Part shown: piece after piece, positions 27,003-64,000 of the stretch
Numbering within the stretch: the stretch's first letter is position 1
Layout: every line of letters begins with the position of its first letter
Assembly (NCBI RefSeq): GCF_040938485.1
Contig: NW_027272213.1
Coordinates: 248,001-312,000, forward strand
DNA length: 64,000 bases
Direction of reading: 5' to 3'
Origin: Diadema antillarum
Taxonomy: Eukaryota
Program-made: the position numbers and the translations under genes
The notes under the pieces: generated by a model
Databases searched by the model: none
What the model saw: only the letters and a program-made list of their open reading frames with translations
What the model was told of the DNA's origin: nothing

Positions 27003-30000
27003 ATGAAAGGCGCGCTTCTTTTAGCGATTGTTGCCCTGCTGGTCCCGGGCTTTCTCGCCGTACCGGTCGGCAGCGGGGTTCTCGACAGAGTCGCTCGAGA
27101 CGCACATCTTCAGAAGGATGAGCCAGTGGTAAGCACAGTAATCAAAATTGATCTCTATTCTAACTATTGTTTCATTCCTCTCTTGATTGCTCGTTTTCTT
27201 TTCAGTTTCATATAGTTGATACATTTGTTACACTATAATAACAACGTTTTGTTACAGTATATGCAAACAACAAACAATATTATTTCCATCTTTGCGTTTT
27301 TTCTTGTTGTTCTTCAGGAAACCCCTCCCCCTAAGAAAGAAGTGGATCTCTCCGTCTCCGAAGAGAAACCCGTGGCATCCCACCAGGAGCCCAAAGATGA
27401 AGAAAATACTCCAGGAACTTTTCAGGGAGACATGATGTTGACCGATGAACAACTGAGGGAAGTCATGGAGGCCATCGATGAAGAGAAAGCTGGTCGCAAG
27501 AAGAGGAAGGCTGTATCGAACACTTTGACCCGCTGGAATCAGAACATCGTGCCTTATGAAATCTCCGGTTCATCGAGTAAGTTTATAACATTTACCTAAA
27601 GTCAATTCAGTTTGAATTTCAGTTTGAAGTTGAATTTTCAGTGACGTATAATAATGTATCAAACATAATTCACCAACGATACATCTTTCTTGATATTCGG
27701 CCTTTTATGATAAATATTATGGTCATATTTAATATGGTCACATTTGATTATGATTATAATATGTCTGCTTCGGCAAACAAATCGCGAATTTTATACAAAA
27801 TGTAGTCCTTATCATTGATTGGGATTTTTCCCTGTTGTGAACGATCTTGGAAAGCTAATTGTTGTCATCTTGTTGATTGTATTTTAGGTAATGATGTTGA
27901 TGTGATCGGGGCTGCCATGGACCACTGGGAACAGCACACCTGTTTGAGATTCGAACCTCGAACCTCACAGCACTCCAGTCAATTGGGACACGGAACCTAT
28001 CTGAACTTTATCAAGGGTGGTGGATGCTGGTCCTACGTTGGAAGGTTCTCCTCATCAAGCAACACGCCCAGAGCTCAGGAAATTTCCATCGGATCTGGAT
28101 GCGAATACGTGAGTTTACTGTTATTCTTGAGTCGCTGTGTTCATTTTAATAAATTTCCAAATACATAATCCCAGTGATTAAAATTTGGTTTGCCTTTCCA
28201 GTGTTTACAGGTACAATCTTTTATCTGCGTTTATGTACAGTGCAGTGGTTGCAAAAGATGCGGTAAATTATCACTAGGAAGACTGGAAAAAGTGTGCCAG
28301 TAGTTATAGATTCAAAATCTGTATTTTGTCGGTGATGTATTATGATCTTTAATTCCTATCTTTGATTCCCTGTGGTTCTCATTTTTCTTTATTCCCCTTT
28401 CAACAACAGCTTGGCATCGTCGCCCATGAGATCGGCCACGCCATCGGTTTCCATCACGAGCAGTCTCGCCCTGACAGGGACGATTACGTCACGGTCCATT
28501 TCGAAAACATCCAGTCGGGATTCGAAGGCAACTTTGAGAAATATTCCTGGAACCAAATAACAACCAGCAACGTTGAATACGACATCGGATCGGTGATGCA
28601 CTACGGATCTCATGTAAGTTTCAAATTTGAAATTGAGTCTGTGGTTAGAAGATTATAATGACCCTAATGCCTAATACTAATGATGAAAGCAGAACGGTGA
28701 ATTCGGTGAGGCTCTAGGATGTCCTAATATATGCCTTTTCTTGTATTTTTCTGTATCTTCATTACCCTTTATAATTCTTCTCATTGCAGAAAAGTAATGT
28801 CTCACGTTAATTTCTATGTTAAGTCTCATCTTAAGTATGTATATTTATCCTTGTACGCAGGGTTTCTCCTCCAACGGCCAACCAACCATCACCACAAACG
28901 ACCCTCTGCAGATGCATCGCCTTGGAAACCGAGAGGGCCTCAGCTTTGCTGACATCAAACTTGCCAATCTCATCTACAACTGCAACGACGGCTGTACTAG
29001 CACACTGTCCTGCCAAAATGGCGGCTACCAGGGTCCCAACTGTGACTGCGTGTGTCCTCCAGGATTCAGCGGAGACCTGTGTGAGAACGGTGACGGCCCA
29101 ACGGAGCCCGAAGGATGTGTCTACAGACTGACCGATCCCGAAGGAGAGATCATGTCACCAAACTACCCGAATAACTATGACAACAACCAGAATTGCCTGT
29201 ACATGATTGAGGTGAGATATTTTGATTACCCCACCAAATTTGTATTTGCACCTAGCGTAATTACATACCACTTTTTGAATAGGTAATTTTACTTTTTCCC
29301 TATAGATAACATCTTTGTACATTTTAAATGTTGCTCGTTGATTGTTACCACTTCTTAATTAGTCTTAAGTGGATTGGGTAATAAATATCATGAAAATATT
29401 CACACTATTTTCATTCCTCCATTGACCTTTCTAGGGAGCTCCAGGTGCTACGATCACACTCACCTTCGTCGACATGGACATCGAGTCCCACACTACCTGC
29501 GCCTACGACTCTGTTGAGGTCCGCACTGGAGATGTTAGCTCGCCGGGACTGAAGTTTTGCGGCACCGCCCTACCTGGGGAGCAGGTGTCGACCGGAAACC
29601 AGCTACTGGTGGCCTTCACATCAGACTACAGCGTGACAAGGCGTGGCTTCAAGGCTACCTATGTCATCAATAATCCTGAACCTCCAACTACACTCCCGAG
29701 TACGACCAACGGTCTTGGAGAATTCGTCGGTACTTGTGGAGGAGATTTCTTGGGGAACAGTGGGACGATGGCCTCTCCAAACTACCCAGACAACTACGAC
29801 AACGGCTTGCAGTGCGTCTACACCATCGAGGTTGATTCTGGTCGTCGAGTCGAACTCAGCTTCCACGATTTGCTGATTGAGGATCAAAGGAGGTGCAGCT
29901 GGGACTACCTTGAGGTGGACCTCGGAGAAGGAGTCAAGGTGCCAATGAAGTAAGCATTGCTATCATGTCATTAATCACATCCACACACTTTAACTGAGCG

Positions 30001-30387
30001 TCATCATTCATTCACTCTTCTCTGATTTAGGTACATAATGGAGTGTTTGATAGCATGGACCTATGATATTGAAAATTTGGTATGGTGGAGAATTCGAGAA
30101 TTCCTTATCAGTTAAGAAAGTTAATCACTATAATCATCATGATTTTTCACTTAATAAGTAGATTGAATTAGGCAAAGTTAACGGTTGCCATTTCACAATA
30201 TCGCCCGATATCAAAAATACTAACCGACTGTTTCGCTATTTTATATTACTTTCTCAGGTTGTGTGGGTCCGACTATCCGATTGGTTCTCTGGTTTCTATT
30301 GGTAACAAAATGGAGCTGATTCTAAGGACTGACGGAAGCGTGACAGATAGGGGCTTTGCTGCAATCTACCGTGCAATCGACCTGTAA
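27003..30387 (+). CDS. Astacin metalloprotease, BP10/SpAN-like (gene C), complete, 601 aa, short linker
   Basis: Exons 27003-27128, 27318-27576, 27888-28108, 28410-28613, 28861-29211, 29435-29949, 30258-30387 (1806 nt, open). [19 protein letters not shown], 2 CUB. Confidence 0.95.
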
Positions 30388-31398
30388 GAAGCATCACCGA
30401 AGACACCTCGAATTCCATAAACTCGAAATAACCTTTCCGATTGTAGTCTACGAAAACGTAGTGCTTACAAATTACATAGAAAGAAAGAAATAGTATGAGT
30501 CAGAAAATTATCTTATTCCCTTCTGCGTTTGCTAGTTTGTTTGTATGTTTGTCTTTTATTTTGCAAAGGCCGTTGTTATGAATTTACAGTAAGATTAATT
30601 TGATCTGTTTACTCTTTGAGCATTCGAGATTAGTGAAAAAATAAATGAACCTGATTGACGGAAAGGGAATATTTCTTCTAGAAGCCTTAAATTGTTTTAA
30701 AGGAGAGATCTAACCAATGTTGCTTGAAATGACGATAAAGACAGGATTTTGTGTGCATTCTGCAGAGCTGAACCTTAGCCATAGACTATTATTGTTCGTG
30801 CTATAGAAATACTGAAATGTCAAAAGCCAAGATTATTGTCCAAAAAATCTTGCATGTATATTCGAACTGTGTCTTGACATCCGTCTGGTACGGCTGGAAA
30901 CTTATTTCGCTGAAAGAATTATATTCCAGGTATCTCATCTATGCATTGATTGTATTTATGATACTTTGTGTGTTGGAATTTGTGATTGTATTTATGGAAC
31001 ATTGTGTAATGAAATTTACGATTGCACATTAATCTATGTATTTATAACTTAACCGTCTGGGACGGCTGGTAGCGAGTCAAAATATGATATTAAAATGTTT
31101 TGATAATTATGAATATAACGCGTCATCGTAATGATCATTGATTTGTTGAACTCATGTCATGTACGATGAATGGAAATGTGTGGAACATGAAAGTGTGTGA
31201 CTGTTTGTGTGTTTCCTGTGCATGTTTGGAGGGTATACAACAGACATGTCAATGTCAGTGATCGTGAAGATGTTTCTTTCTATTTGAAAAGTCTTCAAGT
31301 CAGTTTTTTCGTAACACAATCCTGAAGACCTTCCCAATTTGTCTCTGCAAAACTCTCTGATCCTTTGTCATCCATATTCATTGATCTTTCTCTCCCTT

Positions 31399-31449
<51 letters not shown>

Positions 31450-31588
31450 CTAGCCTGTATGTATATTCTGCATTATGTTCATAAAATTTGTGAACATAAT
31501 GTTTGAGTAAGTATCCTCAATCATATGCTCATTTGTTTTATCCCTCCCCTCCCCCCTTAGTAATACTCATGCAGGCAGAAAAACAGTA

Positions 31589-31633
<45 letters not shown>

Positions 31634-31858
31634 GTATGTATATAGATATATATATATACATATCTTTCTTGTGGCGCGGGGATGGAGCCCCAAGATTATT
31701 AGTTTTATGAGCATCATGGCAATGAACACAATATAACACACAAACTTAACAATATAGAAACACATGCAACAGTCTACAGTATGAATTTGTAATTGATAGA
31801 TGTTAGTATATAGCACATAAAATATTAGGGGAAATAGAATATGAGAAAATATGTAACA

Positions 31859-31994
31859 NNNNNNNNNNNNNNNNNNNNNNNNNNNNNNNNNNNNNNNNNN
31901 NNNNNNNNNNNNNNNNNNNNNNNNNNNNNNNNNNNNNNNNNNNNNNNNNNNNNNNNNNNNNNNNNNNNNNNNNNNNNNNNNNNNNNNNNNNNNN
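31859..31994. other. Assembly gap (136 N)
   Basis: Seen directly; flanks match paralogous sequence at about 41041-41230. Confidence 0.97.
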
Positions 31995-34535
31995 AGTGAG
32001 GGAAAAGTTGAGATTACTGACCAGGTCTTGATGCAATTTGTTAATTTTTTCCTGGTACTGTTTCAAAAACCATTTTATTCCAATAACACAAAAAGTAGAC
32101 TCATTGTTCAATCTCATTTTTTCTCACAAAAAAAAAATCATTTTATAGCAATTTCATTCAATATAAGATCCATTCTCTCCACCATCTCATCATATCTCAG
32201 ATTTTCATATTATTCTGTGCGTAAGACAAGACAAACTGGCAGTACAATGTATCATGCACCACGCAGTGTTTGCTGCCACCAGGCTATCGTGATCTGTCAG
32301 ATATAATCAGAATCTTGGATATACATTGTATGCAATGATGTATTTGACTTCACATACATCAGAGATGACCTGAGAGAGTATATTGACAATCACCACTACA
32401 ACATAAAGAGCTTCATTTCTAGAAATAGAAACTGTTGAACTCTTCCAACTTTCACCCATACAATTGCGGAAAAATGAAAAAACTCATTGTACACTGCATT
32501 ACCACTTCGGTAGTATTTAAGTGTGGTTTTTTCTTTTGATACCCTGTTTTCACAGACAATACAAATATTAAAACTATGTTATCTTTGAAATTTATCAAGT
32601 ATTTTAAGGCATTGCCTCCGGAGATTTTCCCCTTTATTATGCACATAATTTTATGCAAAGAAAGGGCAATATAGATTTATGTCAAGTTAAGAAGCAGAAG
32701 GGCAAACAAGAAGAGGCTACATATCCTCTATTAGATCAAAATATGAAATGGGTGGTATACACCAGTGCAAAAAGAGTATAGAAACTGGGCATTATGTAAA
32801 TATGAAGTATGAACAATTCCATTTCATCACTCAGCAGAGTTAAAGTGATTGCATTTCACCTTCATTTTAACCTTCTTTTATTTCTGCTTGTGAAGCTGCC
32901 TAACTTGACATTTCTAAGACAACAGAATTGCTACATAATGTCTTTATAGTAAATATGTCAAGTATATATGCATCAGACCCCCGGTGCGTTCATATGCACG
33001 CAACACACACGAATTTCCGACGCTTACCATAGATACTCAGTCCCAGATGATCGACATTTCAATTGACAGAGTACGTCTGCTTGTCCATGTTTACTGTTAT
33101 ATGAACAATTTTATATAAGGAAACATGTCATTTCGATAATTTTCGCCGTAGGATCCTTATGGAACTCTTTTCATTTTGTAGGGTATTTGCTCGATAGATA
33201 AAAAACAAACAAACTAAATGTAACATCATTCGTAGCTATCTCGCCGCTCGCATGACACATGAAAACAGATATGTAGTGATATGCTCACTCTACTTACTGT
33301 ACCTGTACATGTATTATCATTCATCATTTAATGCAAAAATACGATTGTATTATAAGCAGAGATGGAGATAAACTTCAGCCTTCAAGTATCAAGCTTGTCG
33401 TTTATTTACAGTTTTCTCTTTCAAACAAAGACATTCAGAAGTATGTTGTGGGTTCTTAGAAAGTTTTCCCTTTAAAATAGCACACTGTCTACACAGGAAA
33501 ACACTCGATTGATGGTAGACAAAAGCAACATCCACTCTTTCTTAGTTCTCAAGATTGTTAGAACCATTCCTTTTCAGGTCGTATAACGAATATGTAATCA
33601 CAATAACAAGAGAGACACATTCAAAATACTATATATACACACTGAAATGAGTTTTGGTACCCAATACCAAACGCCAAATTTAAGAGTATACCCGTTTCCT
33701 ACCGGAACCTAGTAGCCCGTGTATTATTCTTAGGGGATTTTAGAATTCATTATGGAACGGGGTTATTCTCACACTTACTAGTATATTAACAGAGATTATT
33801 GGGATTATCAACCATAAAAAGCCGGATCCAGCCGTATTATAGCAAGGTGATACACCATGAGTAACCTTCAAATTTCCAAAACCCAGAATAAATTTGGATA
33901 TTTCGCCACCATAGGTCATGCGAAACAACTCGTTATGGTGATTGGTCCCAGATCTTATTTTCGTATAAAGCAGCATTCTATAAAAGTGGTACAACTAAAC
34001 GACGGACGTAAATCTTTGTGAGATATCCTCTTCCCGCACAAAACTTCGGAAGGTATTGCTACCAATAATTTAGTCATATTTTTGTTCTTTTGCGATTGTT
34101 TGGATTGACTGTGCTGTTTGACCGGATATCCCTTGCTTTTGAAATGCATCCAGTAGTTGCGGTGGTGTTCCTCCATTCTAACAGATAAACTGATTAAGTG
34201 ATAACCGTTTGTGTTTTATTTCATAAAAAGGTGCATATGATAACATCATCGAATTATAGTGCTGATACAAAGACATCCCATTTCCGCAATAGTAATAATC
34301 AATCATTATCTTCCTATGTTGAAGGATAGATAATACAGTTAGGTCCACTTAAATTAACAATACTGTATTTTTGTCATTAGTAATAATTGTCAAATGTCAA
34401 AAAAAAATACTTCGCAGTGGGAAACTTTACTTGTGCTTCTCCCTATAGGAACCTACTCTTAGTAAACCATTTCAAGTTTCATATGCTCCCGGCACAAAAA
34501 AGAAAAGAAAAGAAACACACACACACACACACACA

Positions 34536-34581
<46 letters not shown>

Positions 34582-34673
34582 CCGCCGGTAGCAGACAAGG
34601 CACTTTATGCTTTACAGCATTGAGCACTTTTCAATCCTCAACAAACTACATATTCCCGACGGATGTATACCAA

Positions 34674-34721
<48 letters not shown>

Positions 34722-35510
34722 TTGTATCACAAATGTTCCACCTCCCATCATTATATCGTCTTGAAAGTGACGTACCACCAGGCTCTGCTCATTGAGGCGA
34801 CTGTATTCGCTTATAATTAGACTCTGTGTTAGGAAATTGTTTGTCTTACTTGTTTTAACTGCACAGTCATGTGTTATTTATCAACTTGAATGTAATCAGT
34901 TTGTGTCACGTGTTATCCGGTAAAAGTGGAAATAAATGTGAATTTGATTGGTGTTTTTGAAATCGAAAGATTAAACAAAATGCGCAATGGCAAAAACAAC
35001 AGTGACATGAAACATGATATCATAGCTATAAATTCATGACGTGACTGCGACGAGCTTGCGCGTTCGTGCGTTGCGCTGTTTACGAGTCCCCATTAAGTAT
35101 CAGAGTCAAGTGCAAACACAGGGGGCCCCTTATAGCTATTACCACAGGCGGATGCTGATACGGTAAACTGGTTCAAGACAATGTGGACTGCGAACGGAAA
35201 TATCATCTATATATTACTTAAAGAGAACAGCAGAGTCATGTTGATTTATTCTTTGAAAGAAATGATGACTTCAAACAGTTGCCTTAAGGTCGCAATAAAA
35301 ATTACTTTAGCGAAGCGGTAGCTCCCCGCCCCCTTGACGTCGGAATCATTAAGATCACTAATCAAGCGTGCTTGAAAAAGATTGGCATTGTCAGTGACAT
35401 TTGAAAAAGAAAACAGAAGAGGGGTAGTGACGACATTCACTTAGTTGAGCAACATGCAAACAGTAGCCATTTGTCAGCAGTATTTGTCGTGGTACATCGA
35501 CCGTGTGGGG

Positions 35511-35553
35511 GAAGATATAAATATGGCTGGACTGACCAGTTTTCTTCAGATCG
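35511..35553 (+). promoter_or_regulatory. Core promoter of gene D: TATA (35516-35523), Inr-like TCAGAT (A at 35548)
   Basis: GAAGATATAAATATGGCTGG; 32-nt spacing conserved. Confidence 0.78.
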
Positions 35554-35697
35554 CTCATCAAGAACAAAGTGCGACACATCAATCTAGAAGGGAGAAACGA
35601 CGAAGTCAACTGTCAGCGTTAAAGAGAAGACAGCAGAGATTTTGAATCTAAGAAATCATTAGAGACTGAAAAGCGCAAGTTAGTATTAGATCTCAAG

Positions 35698-38600
35698 ATG
35701 AAAGCTGCACTAGTAGTAGTGGTGGTTGCTCTACTCGCCCCAGGTCTTCTCGCCGGACCGGTCGGCAGCGGCGTCCTCGACAGACTCGCTCGAGACGTGC
35801 GTCCTCAGAAGGATGAGCCGGTGGTAAGCACAGTTAGATATTCACGAGTTCAAGTTTAGTTTCGTCTTGTTTCTTTTGCTCAGATTCTAAAACACCACCA
35901 ATATTGCAGCACTTTTGATAAAAAATGGTTTGCTAAACTCCGTTCATTAACATCCCAGTTCACCTCCATTCTTGTTGTTTTTCAGGAAACCCCTCCCCCT
36001 AAGAAAGAAGTGGATCTCTCCATCTCCGAAGAGAAGCCCGTGGCATCCCACCAGGAGCCCAAAGATGAAGAAAATACTCCAGGGACTTTTCAGGGAGACA
36101 TGAAGATGACTGATGAACAGTTGAGGGAAGTCATGGAGGCCATCGATGAAGAGAAAGCTGGTCGCAAGAAGAGGAAGGCTGTATCGAACACTTTGACCCG
36201 CTGGAATCAGAACATCGTGCCTTACGTCATCTCATCTTCATCTAGTAAGTTCTGGAACCTGTATGATATCAACAATGAAGAGAGGACGTGGGCAATTTAG
36301 ACTTTGGGCTCTCTTTAAGATATCATCTGTAGGTTTCGTCACCTGTAGGCCGGTAAATCTACTGTATTTCAAGTCTTAGAGACAGGACTTTGAAGATATA
36401 GATTCTACACAAATATAACTGGTATTCGTTGATAACACTTTATATAATGATATTTTCATTCTTGAGGCTCAGTATCTTCATCTTGTTGGCTGTGTTTCAG
36501 GCAGTGATATCAACGTGATCCACGACCATTTGATCATACTTAATAATGATCATTTATGCCTTCTTCGGCAAACAAAAACACAAATTCTGTACCAAATGTA
36601 GTCAGAATCATTGATTGTGATTTTTTTCGTGGTGTAAAGTTCTTGGTAGGCTCATTATCATGTTGTCATCTTGTTGATTGTATTTCAGGTGATGATGTTG
36701 ATGCGATCCGGGCTGCCATGGATCACTGGGAGCAGCACACCTGTTTGAGATTCGAACCAAGAACCTCACAGCACGCCAGTCAGCTGGGACACGGAACCTA
36801 TCTGAACTTTATCAAGGACGATGGATGCTGGTCCTACGTTGGAAGGTTCTCTTCATCCAGCGATTCGCCCACAGCTCAGGATATTTCCATCGGATCTGGA
36901 TGTGAAGACGTGAGTTTGCTGCTATAGCTGATTTTGTAACACGCGTAATATTCTTTTGATTTGATACCAAATCATTACACATCATTCGATTTCAAATCAA
37001 TTATTTCCTAATCCGTAGTTCCAGGAAGGTACATTTTTTTTAATGTAAGTGTTATGCAAATAATATACAAAAGTTGTTATGGTTTGGGTTCGCCCCCCCC
37101 CCCTTCATTAGTGCGGATATACAATGTGATGAATACAATGAGATCTTATTGCGGCAATATAACACCAGTGAAGCATGTCACAATCAGGCAATAGTAGCCC
37201 GTAGATGTGAATTCAGATTTGGTATTTTGGAAGAGATGAATTTCGTTTATGAATCCTTTTTCTTCATTTCCAATCAATAACTCCTTTCTTTTAATTCTAC
37301 CAACAACAGCTCGGCGTCGTTGCCCACGAGATTGGCCACGCCATCGGTTTCCATCACGAGCAGTCTAGACCTGACAGGGACGATTACGTCACAGTCCATT
37401 TTGAAAACATCCAGTCTGGATTCGAAGGCAACTTTGAGAAATATTCCTGGAACCAAATAACAACCAGCAACGTTGAATACGACATCGGATCCCTCATGCA
37501 CTACGGATCTCGTGTAAGTTTTCATGATTTGAAATCTATTAGGATATAACTGACATGTTCATTTTCTTCCCTTTCTACCCTGAACTGTAAATCATGGGAA
37601 GCTATAAATCAGGTATGATAAACAATGTGGACCGGAAACGTAGGCCATCTTTTACTGGCAAGTTCGAATAGGCTAACTTTGTTTGAAAGCGTTGATATTA
37701 TTATAATACCTCCTCTTTTTTCTTTCATACCACGCAGGGTTTCTCCTCCAACGGCCAACCAACCATCACCACAAACGACCCTCTGCAGATGCATCGCCTT
37801 GGAAACCGAGAGGGCCTCAGCTTTGCTGACATCAAACTTGCCAATCTCATCTACAACTGCAACGACGCCTGTACTAGCCCACTGTCCTGCCAAAATGGCG
37901 GCTACCAGGGTCCCAACTGTGACTGCGTGTGTCCTCCAGGATTCAGCGGAGACCTGTGTGAGAACGGTGACGGTCCGACGGAACCCGAAGGATGTGTCTA
38001 TAGACTGACCGATCCCGAAGGAGAGATCATGTCACCAAACTACCCGAATAACTATGACAACAACCAGAATTGCCTGTACATGATTGAGGTGAGATATTTT
38101 GATTACCCCACCAAATTTGTATTTGCACCTAGCGTAATTACATACCACTTTTTGAATAGGTAATTTTACTTTTTCCCTATAGATAACATCTTTGGACATT
38201 TTAAATGTTGCTCGTTGATTGTTACCACTTCTTAATTAGTCTTAAGTGGATTGGGTAATAAATATCATGAAAATATTCACACTATTTTCATTCATCCATT
38301 GACCTTTCTAGGGAGCTCCAGGTGCTACGATCACACTCACCTTCGTCGACATGGACATCGAGTCCCACACTACCTGCGCCTACGACTCTGTTGAGGTCCG
38401 CACTGGAAATGTTAGCTCGCCGGGACTGAAGTTTTGCGGCACCGCTCTACCTGGGGAGCAGGTGTCGACCGGAAACCAGCTACTGGTGGCCTTCACATCA
38501 GACTACAGCGTGACAAGGCGTGGCTTCAAGGCTACCTATGTCATCAATAATCCTGAACCTCCAACTACACTCCCGAGTACGACCAACGGTCTTGGAGAAT

Positions 38601-39270
38601 TCGTCGGTACTTGTGGAGGAGATTTCTTGGGGAACAGTGGGACGATGGCCTCTCCAAACTACCCAGACAACTACGACAACGGCTTGCAGTGCGTCTACAC
38701 CATCGAGGTTGATTCTGGTCGTCGAGTCGAACTCAGCTTCCACGATTTGCTGATTGAGGATCAAAGGAGGTGCAGCTGGGACTACCTTGAGGTGGACCTC
38801 GGAGAAGGAGTCAAGGTGCCAATGAAGTAAGCATTGCTATCATGTCATTAATCATATCCACACACTTTAACTGAACGTCATAATTCATCCACTCTTCTCT
38901 GATTTAGGCACATAATGGAGTGTTTGATAGCATGGACCTATGATATTGAAAATTTGGTATGGTGGAGAATTCGAGAATTCCTTATCAGTTAAGAAAGTTG
39001 ATCACTATAGTTATCATGATTTTTCAGTTAATAAGTAGACTGAATTAGACAAAGTTAAGAGTTGCCATTTCACAATATTGCCCGTTATTAAAAAGTACGA
39101 TACTAACCGACTGTTTCGCTATTTTATATTACTTTCTCAGGTTGTGTGGGTCCGACTATCCGATTGATTCTCTGGTTTCTATTGGTAACAAAATGGAGCT
39201 GATTCTAAGGACCGACGGAAGCGTGACAGATAGGGGCTTTGCTGCAATCTACCGTGCAATCGACCTGTAA
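35698..39270 (+). CDS. Astacin metalloprotease, BP10/SpAN-like (gene D), complete, 601 aa; B-like 5' half, C-like 3' half
   Basis: Exons 35698-35823, 35986-36244, 36689-36909, 37310-37513, 37738-38088, 38312-38826, 39141-39270 (1806 nt, open). [19 protein letters not shown], 2 CUB. Confidence 0.95.
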
Positions 39271-57324: not shown

Positions 57325-58271
57325 TTAAAAGTATAGTTGCAGAAAGTCTGTTATAAATATTGGAAATTATCAGTAAAGCGATCTTGTGAAAGAAGATGTG
57401 GGCAAGAGGTAATTGTCAAGTGAAAATGATCAAATCCTCTAATACAAGCCCTCTGCAACAAATGAGTCATCAGAATGAAATCTGTAGTATTTCAAGAATG
57501 TTTGAGCACGTCATACATTTGAGGTTGTGGTAACAATTTTTCAAGTCTCTCATTTTGAAGACCAGACAAATTGGAAAATATGTAATATTGCAGAGTTATA
57601 CTAGTCACAACGGCAGCATTTGTATTTATGTGTTAAAACCCATAGAAGAAAACCTGATTGCATTGTTGTTTAACTTAATCAGTTCTTTCAATAAAATATA
57701 TTGTGTTTAACCAAACCTCTAGCCAGATATCTCTCTGCAAATGGAAAAAATAGAAAAGCACATGCCTCCACCAAGCCAGGAACTCATTTCCACCCTTACA
57801 CGCATGCAATTTCCAGAAATGCTATTACTAGTAAAAGCCTTTTGCTTGTCATTTTACGCTGCATTTAAGGGCAGACCTTACTGTGTTGATGTTCAGATAA
57901 ATTTACATTTTTTGTCAAAAGATTAACAATTCTTCAAAAATGCACATAAAGTGTCAGGTCTTTACCAAAATTGAATGAGGAGTCCGTTGTATCAGTATTG
58001 ACTTTCTATGCAAGTTTCATGTTTGTCCTTTCAAACCTTATACCAATTTTGCAAACAGACAAACCAACGCTGATGAACACTTAACCTCCTACTTTGTAGC
58101 CGGAGGCAATGAAGAAAATAAAGGCAAAAATATGGCTAATTTAGTCTTTGTTTCACTGTCAAGGATGTCATGAGATTTTAGTGAAATGAATAGAAATGTA
58201 GCAAGTGAAAATGTATGATTTCATTTGGTGATTACACTACATCGAGTATGTGTTAAATTGAGGAACTTGTT

Positions 58272-58433
58272 AAATATGTTACTGTCAGTTTTTGCATTGG
58301 AATTAAATATGTTACTGTCAGTTTTTGCATTGGAATTAAATATGTTACTGTCAGTTTTTGCATTGGAATTAAATGTTACTGTCATTTTTGCATTGGAATT
58401 AAATATGTTACTGTCAGTTTTTGCATTGGAATT
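58272..58433. repeat. 33-bp minisatellite, 5 units (one 30 bp)
   Basis: AAATATGTTACTGTCAGTTTTTGCATTGGAATT repeated head-to-tail. Confidence 0.95.
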
Positions 58434-58593
58434 ACCCCTCTCATTACTGATGTACATATGGAGTAATAAATTTTAATGTATATAATATGAATGAATTAGT
58501 CTATCAGTCATATTGATTTCTACACTAACATTGGATTTGGTGGTTCAACTCTTAACAGATAGGTCATATTCATAAGCTGCTTAGGGTAACTTC

Positions 58594-59825: not shown

Positions 59826-60384
59826 TGTAACGTAACCGTGAGTATCTTCTAGTTTCTCTCTCTCTGAACAGTCAGTAGACAGTATCTTATATACGATGTA
59901 TTCTATGTAGGCTCTACGGTCACGGCCTTTACGTTAAAAATCACGCCAACACACCACGCCACATCATATTCGCAGAATTGATCACACTAAATCACGCGAA
60001 TCATAACGAGTTCATGAAGATAAAGAACTTTATTACCGTATAATGACGATCCAGTCGACACAAAGTGGGTGTGAAGCCGACGCCTAGCACCTAACACCTA
60101 CACACGTAACCCTATGGTAACTCGTAGGTGACGATTAGTCTGCCGGAGAGAATTCAGACAGCACGTCCGTCCGCTGTAGTGAACGCTCAGCAACTCTTCC
60201 CAACTACGCGGACGCGCTCGCAGATATACCCATAGCATAGCATACTACGAGCGCTAAGCGCGTCCGCCCTTTACACATGTACTATAATTAGTTGCCGAGC
60301 GCGCACGCCCTTCCAATACACGTACACGTAAGCTATATACACAACATACTTGTACGCAATCTACTTAATCGTCATTTCATTACA
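59826..60384 (-). repeat. 3' LTR (559 bp)
   Basis: TGTAATG ... CGTTACA termini; minus-strand TATA-like near 60335 and AATAAA at 60034-60029; the other LTR is outside the window. Confidence 0.82.
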
Positions 60385-60397
60385 TTGCCCCTCCCTT
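60385..60397 (-). other. Polypurine tract
   Basis: AAGGGAGGGGCAA directly 5' of the LTR TG. Confidence 0.85.
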
Positions 60398-61208
60398 AGA
60401 ATAGTCAGTCCCTTGACTATCTATCCTATGGCTTGTTTGAATAATAAAACGACCAACTCCGGACATCAAATTTTTTTTCTTTTCTTCCAGGCAATTAGCC
60501 TAGCAGCCTCTTCACTTATATTCTTGTAATCATGCCAGACAATTAAGTACATATGAATATGTTACAAAAACAAATTCTCTCCTTCAAGGAATTACTGAAT
60601 ACACGTATTTACACAAACTAGTGTTTCAACATTTCAAACGTTATATGAACTCCTCTGCTAACAAGGCACTTGCTACCAGCATGTATCGGATTTCAGCCCC
60701 TCAAAAAGCAAAATTGATGAGGTATTAAAATGTTTCACTGTTCCGTATCACTAGTCCTCCGAATACGCATCATTGTTAGAACGCTATAGTGCAACAGTTC
60801 AACAATAAAATCTTTTTGTCACCTTGACAACTGTGGAAGACAATCAAAAAATCTAAAACATTAAAGACTTCATAACCTCACACTTCGTACAACATCATGA
60901 AATGTCTTTTGACTCCATAGAACACCTTGTAAACATGTCATTCTCCGTGTTAATTACATCTCCATGCCACGTGACTACCACCGCCCTCTATAGGCCGGAA
61001 ACGTTTCTCAACTTCAACTTTTAATTACTTACGAAATGTTCGGATACAAGTTCTCGCAGGAACTTTCAAGGTAAGAATGTTTACCTGAAACTGATAAAAT
61101 TTGATGTGTATAAATTGTTACACAACAAGAAAGAAAACCAACAGTCTTTGCAACAAAAAAGCTGAGTACAGCGTCCCTTAAAGTTCACATGTCCTTCTTT
61201 AATGCCAA

Positions 61209-62255
61209 TTAACAAGCTCCAAGGAATCCTGCGTCCAGACTAACGTCATACACGGTGGTCATGTCCTCCTGGAAGACGAGATTTCCGTCATTGTAGGTCT
61301 GGCGTTTCGCTGTCTCTTTGATGCGGTAGACTCGGCCGACGCATGCCTCTTCAAGTTGGGAGGTGCTCATTGGAGATCCGACCTCTCCCCGTGTCAGCTT
61401 GCGGACCTTCGTGGGAGGAGACGACGCATGTACCGTAGCCCGTCGCAGCACTATCACTTGGTAGCGCCGTTCCTTATGCTCCTCAAACACCTTATCGTCA
61501 CCACTGTAGCTTGTACTGGAGGTTTGCTCACTGACGTTGAGCAATTGACCGGGAGTCAGCTTGTGGACGCTTAGCTCCTGCAGTGGACGGCCAACCTGAG
61601 TCGCTCTCAAAATTGGCGCATTTCCGTTCCCAATCCCATCACCCTCAGCCTCTTCCGTTTCCTCTTCCTCAGATGAGTCTGTGAATGCTGCTCCATCCTG
61701 AATGAGAGCCATCATTCCCCTCGGCTTTCCACTCAAAGGGGGACGAACAATTACGGAAGATGGACGAGCTGGCTGTACCTGGGCCTGATGCAGCTCAGCC
61801 TCTTCACCAACAGGCTCGGTTTCATCCAGATGAACTGCACGTTCCTCGCCATCAGAAATCTCTGCCGGGCCGTTCGCTGCCTCCTTCGATGGCAGCGCTT
61901 CCGACGGCTCTTCATCGACAGCCTTCCTAGTTGATGGCGACACAAGAATTTCAATACCCGATTCTTCCTTCCTGCTCGCCACAGGCTCAGCCCGTCCCTG
62001 TCTAGCTGACGGGCGCTCTGGAAACATGCCGCCCTGACTCCTGCTTCCTTCCCCACGACGATCCCTTCCCTGGTGACGGTGCCTAATGTGGGCCTGAAGA
62101 TTGTCCCTTCGATTGAATGCACACTCACACTGGTCGCATTGATAGGACATTGGCCTGCGGTGCTCCACATCTATATGCCGCATTAAACTTCGTCGATGAC
62201 GAAAGAAGCGTCGACAAGTGTAGCACTTCAAGGTGGCGCTCTCGTACCGAACCAT
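61209..62255 (-). CDS. Additional retroelement ORF: 348-aa protein with two N-terminal C2H2 zinc fingers
   Basis: Uninterrupted frame; ATG at 62255 (the track start at 62273 is TTG). CYTCRRFFRHRRSLMRHIDVEH and YQCDQCECAFNRRDNLQAHIRHRH; acidic/disordered middle; duplicated C-terminal motif. Confidence 0.85.
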   Translation of the reverse strand: MVRYESATLKCYTCRRFFRHRRSLMRHIDVEHRRPMSYQCDQCECAFNRRDNLQAHIRHRHQGRDRRGEGSRSQGGMFPERPSARQGRAEPVASRKEESGIEILVSPSTRKAVDEEPSEALPSKEAANGPAEISDGEERAVHLDETEPVGEEAELHQAQVQPARPSSVIVRPPLSGKPRGMMALIQDGAAFTDSSEEEETEEAEGDGIGNGNAPILRATQVGRPLQELSVHKLTPGQLLNVSEQTSSTSYSGDDKVFEEHKERRYQVIVLRRATVHASSPPTKVRKLTRGEVGSPMSTSQLEEACVGRVYRIKETAKRQTYNDGNLVFQEDMTTVYDVSLDAGFLGAC

Positions 62256-62415
62256 AGTGAAATACCTGTACAATTAAGAACAAAAACAAACAAACAGGAC
62301 ACATCTTTACTGTCCTGAAGACCTGTGGTCAAGTCAAGTGTAATTCAATATAAACAGCAAATTACCACAGATGCTTCACATCGGCTTAGTGGCTCAGTAT
62401 ACAAATGACTGAGCA

Positions 62416-63999
62416 TTATATTTCTTGAATCAACCGCTTTGGTTCTCTTCTCTGTCTCTGTGGATTCCTACGAGCTGCTGATGCAGGAGTCTGACGCTCA
62501 ATAGGTGATTGATTATGGTATTCCTGTTGGTGGTCCACAGCAGTGTTTACATCCATGGTGCTTATACCAGGAACTTCTGACTCGATAAGTGGTGCTGCTG
62601 TTGGAATTACTAGTTCGCCCTCTGACGAATCGACGTCTTGTTGCTTTGGTATTGTGCCTGGTTCTTGGTTCCACGTTTCTAACTCCTCGCCCTGATACGG
62701 TTTCAGGCGATCTGCATGGACAACCATCATCTTCCCCTGGGGTTTTGCTTGAAGTCTGTAAGTGACATCTGATAACCTGTGGATGATAAGGTAAGGTCCT
62801 TGCCATTTCCTCTGGAGTTTTGGTGACAAGCCCTTAGTTTTGGCTGCGTTAAAACACCAGACGAATGTCCCCACCTTTAGGTCTCTCTTACCAGCAGTCT
62901 TATCGTAAGTCATCTTTTGGTGTCTAGCGCTCTTTTGCAGATTCTTCCTTGCCCTTGCATGAGCTAAGCCCATGCGTCTTCGAAGATTTTCCGCATAGTC
63001 CGTCTGCAGTTCGTCCTCGGTCTGCTCGTCTTGAAGTACCTCTGTCGTGAGGTCTATCGGCAGACGTGTCTCACGCCCAAGCATCAGCATGTTAGGCGTC
63101 TCGCCTGTAGAGTCCTGAGGGGCAGACCTGTAAGCAAGAAGAGCTAATGGCAATTTTTCATCCCAGTCACGCTGCCTCTGAAGTGGATTGATCATCAACG
63201 ATACCATGGTTATTAGAGTTCGATTGAATCTCTCAATCAAGCCGTCAGACTTCGGATTGTAAGGTGTCGTACGGGTCTTTTCGATGCCTAGAATCCGACA
63301 CATCTCCTTGAACACTCGGGACTCAAAATTTCGGCCCTGATCAGAGTGTAACGTCAAGGGAACTCCAAATCGGCACACAAACTCTTGCACGAACTTGTTT
63401 GCTACCGTCTCTGCTGATTGGTCTGCTAATGGGTAAGCCTCCATCCACTTACTAAAGTAATCCCCAACGACAAGGATGTATCTATTCCCCCGTTCCGTCT
63501 GCGGGAGAGGTCCGACTATGTCCAGAGCAACTCTTTCCATTGGCATTCCTACTGGCCTTTGTTGTAGCGGTGCTTTCTTGTGAGCATTGGGAGCTTTCTT
63601 GCTGGCACACATGTTGCATGTTCTAACCACTGACCTGATGTCCGCATCCATACTGGGCCAGTAGAATCTCATGCGCACCTTTGCGATGGTTTTATTCATA
63701 CCGAGATGGCCTCCTGTGGCACCACCATGCAGTTCTCTGACAACTGCTTTGCGGTGACTTTCCGGTAGGACTCTGTGCCATCTCACCTCGCCTCCATCGT
63801 CTGATTCCCATCTTCTGCACAATACATCACTCTTCAACTCCAGCTGATCCCATATTCGCCAATATGTCTTCTCAGTTCCAGGTTTGCCTATCATCTCTGA
63901 CCAGTCTGGTCTTGGGTCAGATTTCTCCTTACGTTCTATGATCCACTTCATGGATGAGTCTTCCAACTGTGCAGCTTTTATGTCTGCGGTGGTAACATT
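62416..63999 (-). CDS. pol: Gypsy pol, C-terminal part (integrase), open to the window edge
   Basis: H2C2 (LHGGATGGHLG...CNMC), catalytic VALDIVGP / HSDQGRNF / GLIERFN, GPY motif (WQGPY), terminal RRNPQRQRREPKRL. Confidence 0.95.
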   Translation of the reverse strand, partial: NVTTADIKAAQLEDSSMKWIIERKEKSDPRPDWSEMIGKPGTEKTYWRIWDQLELKSDVLCRRWESDDGGEVRWHRVLPESHRKAVVRELHGGATGGHLGMNKTIAKVRMRFYWPSMDADIRSVVRTCNMCASKKAPNAHKKAPLQQRPVGMPMERVALDIVGPLPQTERGNRYILVVGDYFSKWMEAYPLADQSAETVANKFVQEFVCRFGVPLTLHSDQGRNFESRVFKEMCRILGIEKTRTTPYNPKSDGLIERFNRTLITMVSLMINPLQRQRDWDEKLPLALLAYRSAPQDSTGETPNMLMLGRETRLPIDLTTEVLQDEQTEDELQTDYAENLRRRMGLAHARARKNLQKSARHQKMTYDKTAGKRDLKVGTFVWCFNAAKTKGLSPKLQRKWQGPYLIIHRLSDVTYRLQAKPQGKMMVVHADRLKPYQGEELETWNQEPGTIPKQQDVDSSEGELVIPTAAPLIESEVPGISTMDVNTAVDHQQEYHNQSPIERQTPASAARRNPQRQRREPKRLIQEI

Positions 64000-64000
64000 C

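Follow-up and report, generated by a model that had tools for sequence, protein, structure and literature searches.

A tandem C2H2 zinc-finger protein encoded in the envelope position of an echinoderm Ty3/Gypsy retrotransposon lineage

The 64,000-nucleotide stretch of Diadema antillarum DNA analyzed here (contig NW_027272213.1, positions 248,001 to 312,000, hereafter the window) ends within a Ty3/Gypsy long terminal repeat (LTR) retrotransposon that carries, downstream of pol, an intact open reading frame (ORF3) for a protein with two C2H2 zinc fingers. ORF3 is neither an envelope (env) gene nor a host passenger; it is located between pol and the polypurine tract (PPT) and 3' LTR in every lineage that can be read, and it is kept intact under purifying selection. 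With moderate confidence, we regard it as a genuine and anciently retained third gene of a non-chromoviral lineage of echinoderm Ty3/Gypsy elements, whose product would act as a nuclear regulator supplied by the element itself.

In the window, ORF3 comprises 348 codons on the minus strand, from the ATG at 62255-62253 to the stop codon at 61211-61209, with zero internal stops; the plus-strand reading of the same segment contains many. A sequence-only reading of this DNA had pointed to an intact frame of this size between the integrase stop codon and the PPT/LTR, giving correct coordinates but missing that the gene lies on the minus strand. The integrase frame, 63999 to 62416 (528 codons, with its stop codon at 62418-62416), shows neither a stop nor a frameshift in its visible part, and no chromodomain was matched by Pfam in this integrase or in the pol protein of a complete Diadema relative (L004); the element is a non-chromoviral Ty3/Gypsy. 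The 5' LTR, the primer-binding site (PBS), gag, and most of pol including the reverse transcriptase (RT) of the window copy are located beyond base 64000, and no second copy of the element occurs within the window. Because the partner LTR is likewise beyond the window end, the 3' LTR is recognized by its end motifs and by its relatives only: both its start and end motifs match those of the paired LTRs of L004, L006, and L013 (Table 1). An AATAAA is present inside this LTR at 60034-60029, and position 59826 is the element edge, where the G+C content changes from 0.46-0.55 inside to 0.35 beyond. The three runs of N in the window are distant from the element. The domain order, LTR, PPT, and PBS are those of Ty3/Gypsy (Metaviridae) elements, as read partly from L004 and other relatives.

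The N-terminal part of the ORF3 protein is composed of two tandem fingers that both fit the C-x2-C-x12-H-x3-5-H pattern and the beta-beta-alpha fold, with C11/C14/H27/H32 and C40/C43/H56/H61 as the zinc ligands and with an inter-finger linker of the canonical 7-residue length. Pfam zf-C2H2 was matched twice (30.2 bits, cut-off 25.2), AlphaFold2 (AF2) modeled the fingers with a predicted local distance difference test (pLDDT) score of 85-94 from a 28-sequence alignment, and Foldseek matched them to the Tramtrack two-finger peptide and to CTCF-DNA complexes with a probability of 1.0; DNA-bound fingers of ZBTB7A and ZNF568 were also matched in the PDB profile and Foldseek searches. The ligands of the C2H2 pattern are retained in 13/14 to 15/15 members of the family described below, and the zinc ligands and the helix positions -1, 2, 3, and 6 of both fingers are the same as in the window protein in 15/15 to 18/18 members (15/15 to 16/16 for finger 1), the exception among the contact positions being position 6 of finger 2 (the same in 10/18); the residues adjoining the contact positions vary freely. 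This near-invariance of the contact positions suggests one constant nucleic-acid target. The contact residues are of the types typical of DNA-reading fingers, and sequence-specific DNA binding by the ORF3 fingers would be in keeping with these near-invariant positions and with the DNA-bound structural matches.

The fingers are followed by a disordered linker, of which the acidic portion (aa 101-237) has a pI of 4.3-4.6 and which carries two short conserved motifs (around P107 and at G176-K177) together with a copy-specific insertion of ~50 aa. Since the maximum 19-residue Kyte-Doolittle mean of the protein is only 0.55, and its N-terminus is not hydrophobic, it has neither a signal peptide nor a membrane segment; no env or fusion protein was matched in Pfam, PDB, or BFVD. 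An identity as an envelope glycoprotein was rejected on these grounds, namely the lack of a signal peptide, of an anchor, and of a fusion-protein match. The C-terminal domain is modeled as three long beta-hairpins with one short helix (pLDDT 82-97) in the 28-sequence AF2 run, which was used in place of a run on a 2-sequence alignment that was confident for the fingers only. No match for this domain was obtained in Pfam, PDB sequences, PDB folds (Foldseek), or BFVD; the sheets of CapZ and gasdermin were considered and rejected (E > 0.01, template-modeling score < 0.2). Judging from the model, the C-terminal beta domain appears to be novel; it is conserved, and it is the part by which the ORF3 family is defined. 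The sequence-only reading had rightly described the two fingers, the acidic disordered region, and the absence of a signal peptide and transmembrane segment, yet its account was incomplete, overlooking the beta domain as well as the splice-acceptor-like signal and the sea-star host version of the gene considered below.

Relatives were collected by running a HMMER profile of the C-terminal domain against 1.84 billion representative proteins. This full scan was needed because the word-index searches were too coarse for the ORF3 family, retrieving P0001 only with the whole protein, four proteins with the C-terminal profile, and again P0001 only with the finger region. The scan gave 28 hits, one of them spurious (P0026), leaving 27 true relatives; those named to species are all from echinoderms, either sea urchins or sea stars (Lytechinus variegatus, L. 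pictus, Diadema antillarum, Acanthaster planci, and Patiria miniata). An architecture of two fingers, a linker that is Arg/Ser-rich and then acidic with the two motifs, and the beta domain is common to most of the full-length hits. P0001, from a Tara Oceans contig, is 45% identical to the window protein over the full length, and in a neighbor-joining tree the two group together (bootstrap 99) within a sea-urchin-type clade, the other half of the tree being made up of sea-star-type element proteins. The automatic NCBI names of the relatives ('ZNF646-like', 'PRDM16-like', and 'bowel-like') present ORFs of elements as host genes and are hereby corrected. In P0005, P0016, P0019, and P0025, the two fingers are the sole Pfam matches, with no KRAB, BTB, or PR/SET domain, and membership in the PRDM, ZNF646, and Bowel/Odd-skipped families was rejected for want of a PR/SET domain, a long finger array, or a family flanking domain. 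A metagenome contig (L002, MDSQ01146119.1) that matched through the fingers only was set aside as an unrelated G+C-rich C2H2 gene fragment, possibly of vertebrate origin.

In every element copy with a readable DNA context, the gene follows a Gypsy integrase. The LTR pairs of the relatives are 96-100% identical, and in four sea-urchin copies (L003, L004, L005, and L013) ORF3 lies inside pairs of 99-100% identity, with gag and pol also intact in L004 and L013. In L004, which is located in the span of a cation-ATPase gene, pol encodes an Asp protease, RVT_1, RT_RNaseH, and integrase in this order, and gag shows a weak zf-CCHC match below the threshold (19.1 bits, cut-off 20.8). The gag-pol region of L003, the ORF3 of which is intact, has at least eight breaks (frameshifts and probably stops). 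Identical ORF3 proteins are found at several Diadema loci, and in sister lineages the proteins share 27-59% amino-acid identity, always behind a Gypsy integrase. When the window element, L004, L012, and L013 are compared, the integrases are 58-64% identical and the ORF3 proteins 27-37%, indicating old, separate lineages all of which have kept ORF3. The central claim of the sequence-only reading, namely that a C2H2 protein encoded in the env slot belongs to the Gypsy element, is thus borne out by the location of ORF3 inside nearly identical LTR pairs, and the gene is retained in sister copies rather than being a one-off passenger, as that reading had also required.

Neither is the gene drifting neutrally, a further point on which the early interpretation depended. 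Between the window copy and the Tara contig element (L001), the nonsynonymous divergence (dN) is 0.27-0.34 with the synonymous divergence (dS) saturated, dN/dS is about 0.11 in the C-terminal domain, and the differences are distributed as 93/73/186 over the three codon positions. The same picture is obtained for other ORF3 pairs; overall, synonymous changes predominate, with a dN/dS of about 0.1 or lower. ORF3 nevertheless diverges about twice as fast as the integrase.

A signal resembling a 3' splice site precedes the gene. A T-rich tract (9-11 pyrimidines of 15) followed by CAG is found 7-25 nt before the ORF3 ATG in 8/8 lineages, within a spacer that is not alignable around it. The same configuration occurs at 7.6% of positions in two complete elements taken as background, giving a probability of its chance presence in all of about 1e-9 for eight independent lineages, or about 2e-7 for six. 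As this acceptor-like signal is conserved before the ATG in all eight, a spliced subgenomic mRNA is suggested; the translation of ORF3 from a singly spliced subgenomic mRNA, with the T-rich tract and CAG as the predicted acceptor, can be proposed with some assurance.

The ends of the elements are equally recognizable. The PPT core GGGAGGGG stands directly before the 3' LTR in L001, L004, L005, L006, and L013, and the PBS starts with TGG, its first 18 nt being the same in L003, L004, and L006 with one difference in L013. Target duplications of 4 bp are readable in L003 and L004; the readable insertion sites show AT-rich duplications of this length (ATAC, ATAT, and ATAT) in unrelated places, that is, in introns of the cation-ATPase gene and of an MT-A70 gene and near a UDP-glycosyltransferase gene. 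Membership in Troyka was rejected, since Troyka ends in CG...CG and makes 3-bp duplications, whereas the family of the window element has TG...CA ends and 4-bp duplications. Within the non-coding DNA, a 10-nt box AGGGACTGAC at 60413-60404, a few bases before the PPT, is common to the window element, L004, and the sea-star-type L010, with its 9-nt core also present in L003, and four lineages have a short island AAAGACAT in common within their 3' non-coding stretch; the rest is unalignable between sea-urchin-type and sea-star-type elements. The box and the island are candidate cis elements or binding sites. A comparison of shared k-mers in the 3' non-coding stretch and LTR gave short boxes only, from which no testable target of the fingers emerged, and Rfam had no match in the 3' end of the element. 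In the Tara contig (L001 1572-2299), the LTR runs straight into PBS-like sequence and a 33-bp tandem array; this adjacency implies that the assembler crossed a collapsed LTR and continued in the 5' leader. Tandem arrays of ~100 bp are also held by the leaders of the L. pictus elements (L006 7586-8555; L013 3695-4555).

Table 1 Features of the element in the window and element copies carrying ORF3
Feature or locus	Position in window, or source	Strand	Basis or state
3' LTR, 559 bp, TG...CA, 5-nt inverted ends	59826..60384	-	End motifs match relatives' paired LTRs
Polypurine tract (PPT)	60388..60397	-	Core shared with relatives
Non-coding stretch, ORF3 to PPT, ~810 nt, G+C 0.37	60398..61208	-	Small conserved islands
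ORF3, zinc-finger accessory protein, 348 aa	61209..62255, stop codon included	-	ORF, Pfam, relatives
C-terminal all-beta domain (aa 238-342)	61230..61544	-	AF2, profile search
Disordered linker, basic Arg/Ser-containing (aa 63-100), then acidic (aa 101-237)	61545..62069	-	AF2, composition
C2H2 finger 2 (C40-H61)	62073..62138	-	Pfam, AF2, Foldseek
C2H2 finger 1 (C11-H32)	62160..62225	-	Pfam; AF2 pLDDT about 90
Spacer, pol stop to ORF3 start, 160 nt	62256..62415	-	Poorly conserved apart from 3' end
Candidate 3' splice site: T-rich tract ending in CAG (62268-62266), 10 nt before ATG	62266..62300	-	Conserved in lineages
pol 3' part (integrase)	62416..64000	-	Reading frame open to window end
Integrase_p58_C/SH3	62698-62799	-	Pfam
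rve core	63253-63543	-	Pfam
Integrase_H2C2	63592-63765	-	Pfam
L004	Diadema		LTRs 100% identical (479 bp); intact gag (476 aa), pol (1269 aa), ORF3 (311 aa); 4-bp target duplication
L005	Diadema		Same family as L004, another locus
L013	L. pictus		LTRs 100% identical; intact gag, pol, ORF3
L003	L. variegatus		LTRs 99% identical; ORF3 intact; gag-pol in nine ORF pieces
L006	L. pictus		LTR-bounded 4.9-kb derivative; nearly all pol deleted, ORF3 kept
L012, L010/L011, L014	Metagenome or run-assembly contigs		Integrase end directly upstream of ORF3
L007	Acanthaster		Decayed copy; pieces of RT, integrase, and ORF3 combined in gene model P0015; no LTR pair found

Two relatives, P0019 of A. planci and P0025 of P. 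miniata, are encoded by a syntenic host gene (L009 10001-13363 in P. miniata and L008 10001-13788 in A. planci), flanked by a UCH gene on one side and by Methyltransf_16 and VTT-domain genes on the other. In each, three of the four coding exons are small, and the remaining one is large and encodes the fingers, a linker rich in Ser, and the beta domain; neither an integrase nor an LTR is present within 10 kb. A dN/dS of 0.21 between the two indicates purifying selection. Their position in the tree, next to the sea-star-type element proteins, is weakly supported (bootstrap 41). Domestication of an element copy is favored over capture of the host gene by the elements, because the element proteins are without the three 5' exons and because the element gene is present in both classes, whereas the host gene has been seen only in sea stars. 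The sea-star gene is thus more probably a domesticated copy than the source gene, by a modest preponderance.

Referring to these features, a possible course of events for ORF3 can be outlined. A spliced subgenomic mRNA would carry ORF3 in the way that env mRNAs carry env, and the protein might then enter the nucleus, where the fingers could bind one fixed short motif, conceivably in the double-stranded DNA of the element or its chromatin as the likeliest target. Partners would be recruited or oligomerized through the acidic linker and the beta domain, and the protein might in this way regulate expression of its own element, either as an activator or as an anti-silencing factor; in sea stars, a copy would have been domesticated as the spliced, syntenic host gene. 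Several observations sit uneasily with this scheme. Two fingers specify only about six bases, their invariant contact residues fit poorly with fast-diverging LTRs, and the only conserved non-coding boxes found are those beside the PPT and in the 3' non-coding stretch. An Arg/Ser-rich linker would fit a role in RNA processing as well. No splice donor was established by a search of the leaders: those of the Diadema copies contain one 8/9 consensus match, situated a short distance past the PBS, and those of L003 and L013 contain none. Moreover, the relatives were found via predicted proteins, by which intact ORFs are over-sampled, and the direction of transfer between the host gene and the element is weakly supported by the above bootstrap value of 41.

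Among the alternatives to a DNA-binding regulator, the one that we take most seriously, while considering it unlikely, is an RNA-handling factor that binds the element RNA and sets the balance between unspliced and spliced forms or the export of the unspliced RNA, like Rev-type proteins or CERV, the product of a Caenorhabditis elegans element. A splicing element must export its intron-containing genomic RNA (PMC10309623), the linker following the fingers is Arg/Ser-rich in many members, small conserved islands exist in the 3' non-coding stretch, and CERV, which is possibly equipped with a zinc finger, is likewise encoded in the env slot and translated from a spliced mRNA. However, the ORF3 fingers resemble classical DNA-reading tandem fingers, with DNA complexes as their best structural matches; Pfam and the profile searches returned no similarity to CERV or an RNA-binding family; and neither an Rfam entry nor an obvious structured RNA element was found. 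It is less likely still that the protein is an integration-targeting factor, which would steer insertions by recognizing a motif in the target DNA with its fingers and binding the integrase or capsid with its C-terminal domain, and would thereby stand in for the absent chromodomain. Zinc fingers do direct target choice in some non-LTR elements, the integrase here lacks a chromodomain, and the invariance of the contact residues suggests a target that stays constant instead of co-evolving with the LTR; against this, the readable insertion sites share only their AT-rich 4-bp duplications in unrelated places, and no common flanking motif was seen in the four or five sites available.

The occupied env slot and a beta-rich C-terminal domain that, from its model, could oligomerize are also compatible with a structural, non-enzymatic particle or transmission protein replacing env for cell-to-cell spread or particle assembly, and Gypsy elements that have no env but carry other small ORFs serving cell-to-cell spread have been reported in flies (PMC11952523). 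The ORF3 protein is nevertheless poorly suited to such a role, having no signal peptide, no hydrophobic segment, no similarity to fusion or attachment proteins, and fingers of the DNA type, and we judge this explanation very improbable. There is scarcely any room for a host zinc-finger gene that adjoins the element or for a useless fragment recently captured by it. This explanation would agree with the annotation of ORF3s as host genes by NCBI pipelines and with the real host version in sea stars, but it is contradicted by the placement of the gene inside the four closely matching LTR pairs, with target duplications read in two of these copies, by the identical proteins at separate Diadema loci, by its presence in lineages whose integrases differ by about 40%, and by purifying selection on a protein devoid of KRAB, BTB, and PR/SET domains.

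The place of ORF3 among accessory genes of retrotransposons is worth comparing with those of other systems, the best functional analogue with experimental support being CERV of the C. elegans Ty3/Gypsy element Cer1, an env-position but non-envelope protein that is translated from a spliced mRNA, nuclear, and lineage-specific, and that has a possible zinc-binding loop (PMC10309623). The likeness lies in the non-envelope protein in the env slot. CERV is, however, encoded by five exons, has an N-terminus in common with gag, and contains a C4-type loop, whereas the ORF3 protein seems to be encoded by one exon in its entirety, has two C2H2 fingers, and ends in a C-terminal domain of another kind; the 1.84-billion-protein profile search gave no nematode-named hit, Pfam matched no family that would indicate homology with CERV, and the searches revealed no likeness to it in sequence or fold. 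In bdelloid rotifers, the ORF3s of LTR retrotransposons encode a GDSL esterase, a DEDDy exonuclease, coiled-coil proteins, or transmembrane proteins, and are family-specific, located downstream of pol, and typically expressed from spliced messages (PMC5408684). They similarly exemplify the env slot as a capture site for accessory genes; in contrast to the echinoderm gene, they are enzymes or membrane proteins of another host phylum, none of them a zinc-finger protein (neither 'zinc' nor 'C2H2' occurs in PMC5408684).

Env genes of the errantivirus type, known from Ty3/Gypsy elements of insects and other metazoans (PMC13524379), occupy the same slot on the same strand and probably follow the same expression logic, with an acceptor just before the ORF, but encode a membrane glycoprotein with the signal peptide and anchor that the ORF3 protein lacks. 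The DNA-binding transactivators of complex retroviruses, such as the foamy-virus Tas protein, are encoded 3' of pol, expressed from spliced mRNA, and act on the promoter of their own element, which is the role proposed for ORF3; there is no homology between them and ORF3, and they are not known to have C2H2 fingers. With Tramtrack, CTCF, and ZBTB7A, ORF3 shares finger sequence and fold and the 7-residue inter-finger linker, differing from them in having two fingers only, no KRAB, BTB, SCAN, or PR-SET domain, the novel beta domain, and a location in a retrotransposon.

To our knowledge, few of the known env-slot accessory genes have a recognizable biochemical identity, and a role has been demonstrated for CERV alone. 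In the echinoderm elements, the slot is taken by a classical nucleic-acid-reading module conserved across echinoderm classes, joined to an unknown beta domain and having a host counterpart. If the function holds, this would be a concrete case of a retrotransposon bringing its own sequence-specific regulator, along with a likely example of domestication. Tentatively, and short of what we would call probable, the echinoderm lineage could be regarded as one of 'complex' retrotransposons. Probably from a time before sea stars and sea urchins diverged, it would have carried its own sequence-specific C2H2 regulator, which would be joined to a fold not known from other proteins, be produced from a spliced subgenomic mRNA, and act on a fixed motif. 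A sea-star copy would later have been domesticated as a single-copy nuclear gene that possibly controls the same elements. The suggestion that the gene was undescribed stands as far as the full-text literature is concerned, in which no published description of a C2H2 ORF3 was found, Repbase and Dfam being outside the reach of that search. A metazoan survey lists no env-carrying Gypsy elements in Echinodermata and does not mention the ORF3 gene (PMC13524379); with ORF3, the echinoderm Gypsy elements reported as env-less are not all two-gene elements.

Some copies are of interest for their rearrangements. In the L. pictus derivative L006 (7075-11965), an exact copy of 166 bp of the post-LTR leader, starting inside the PBS, is placed directly before the ORF3 ATG. 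The idea that L006 represents a reverse-transcribed spliced mRNA was rejected, as the leader copy begins inside the PBS and the junction is a 2-nt microhomology with no GT donor. P0007 (273 aa) combines the N-terminal part of a retroviral-type aspartic protease with the ORF3 linker motifs and beta domain, without fingers, and is probably an internally deleted element copy.

Elsewhere in the window, a 33-bp tandem repeat (5 copies, 95% matches) is located at 58270-58434 in host DNA ~1.4 kb past the element end, and it caused the only second ORF3 tblastn match in the window, a weak one (E 0.17), which was dismissed as due to chance. Farther away, at 22002-38830 on the plus strand, repeated exons, a mark of an animal host, code for the final part of an astacin protease domain, for an EGF-like module, and for CUB domains, resembling tandemly duplicated astacin/CUB metalloprotease genes.

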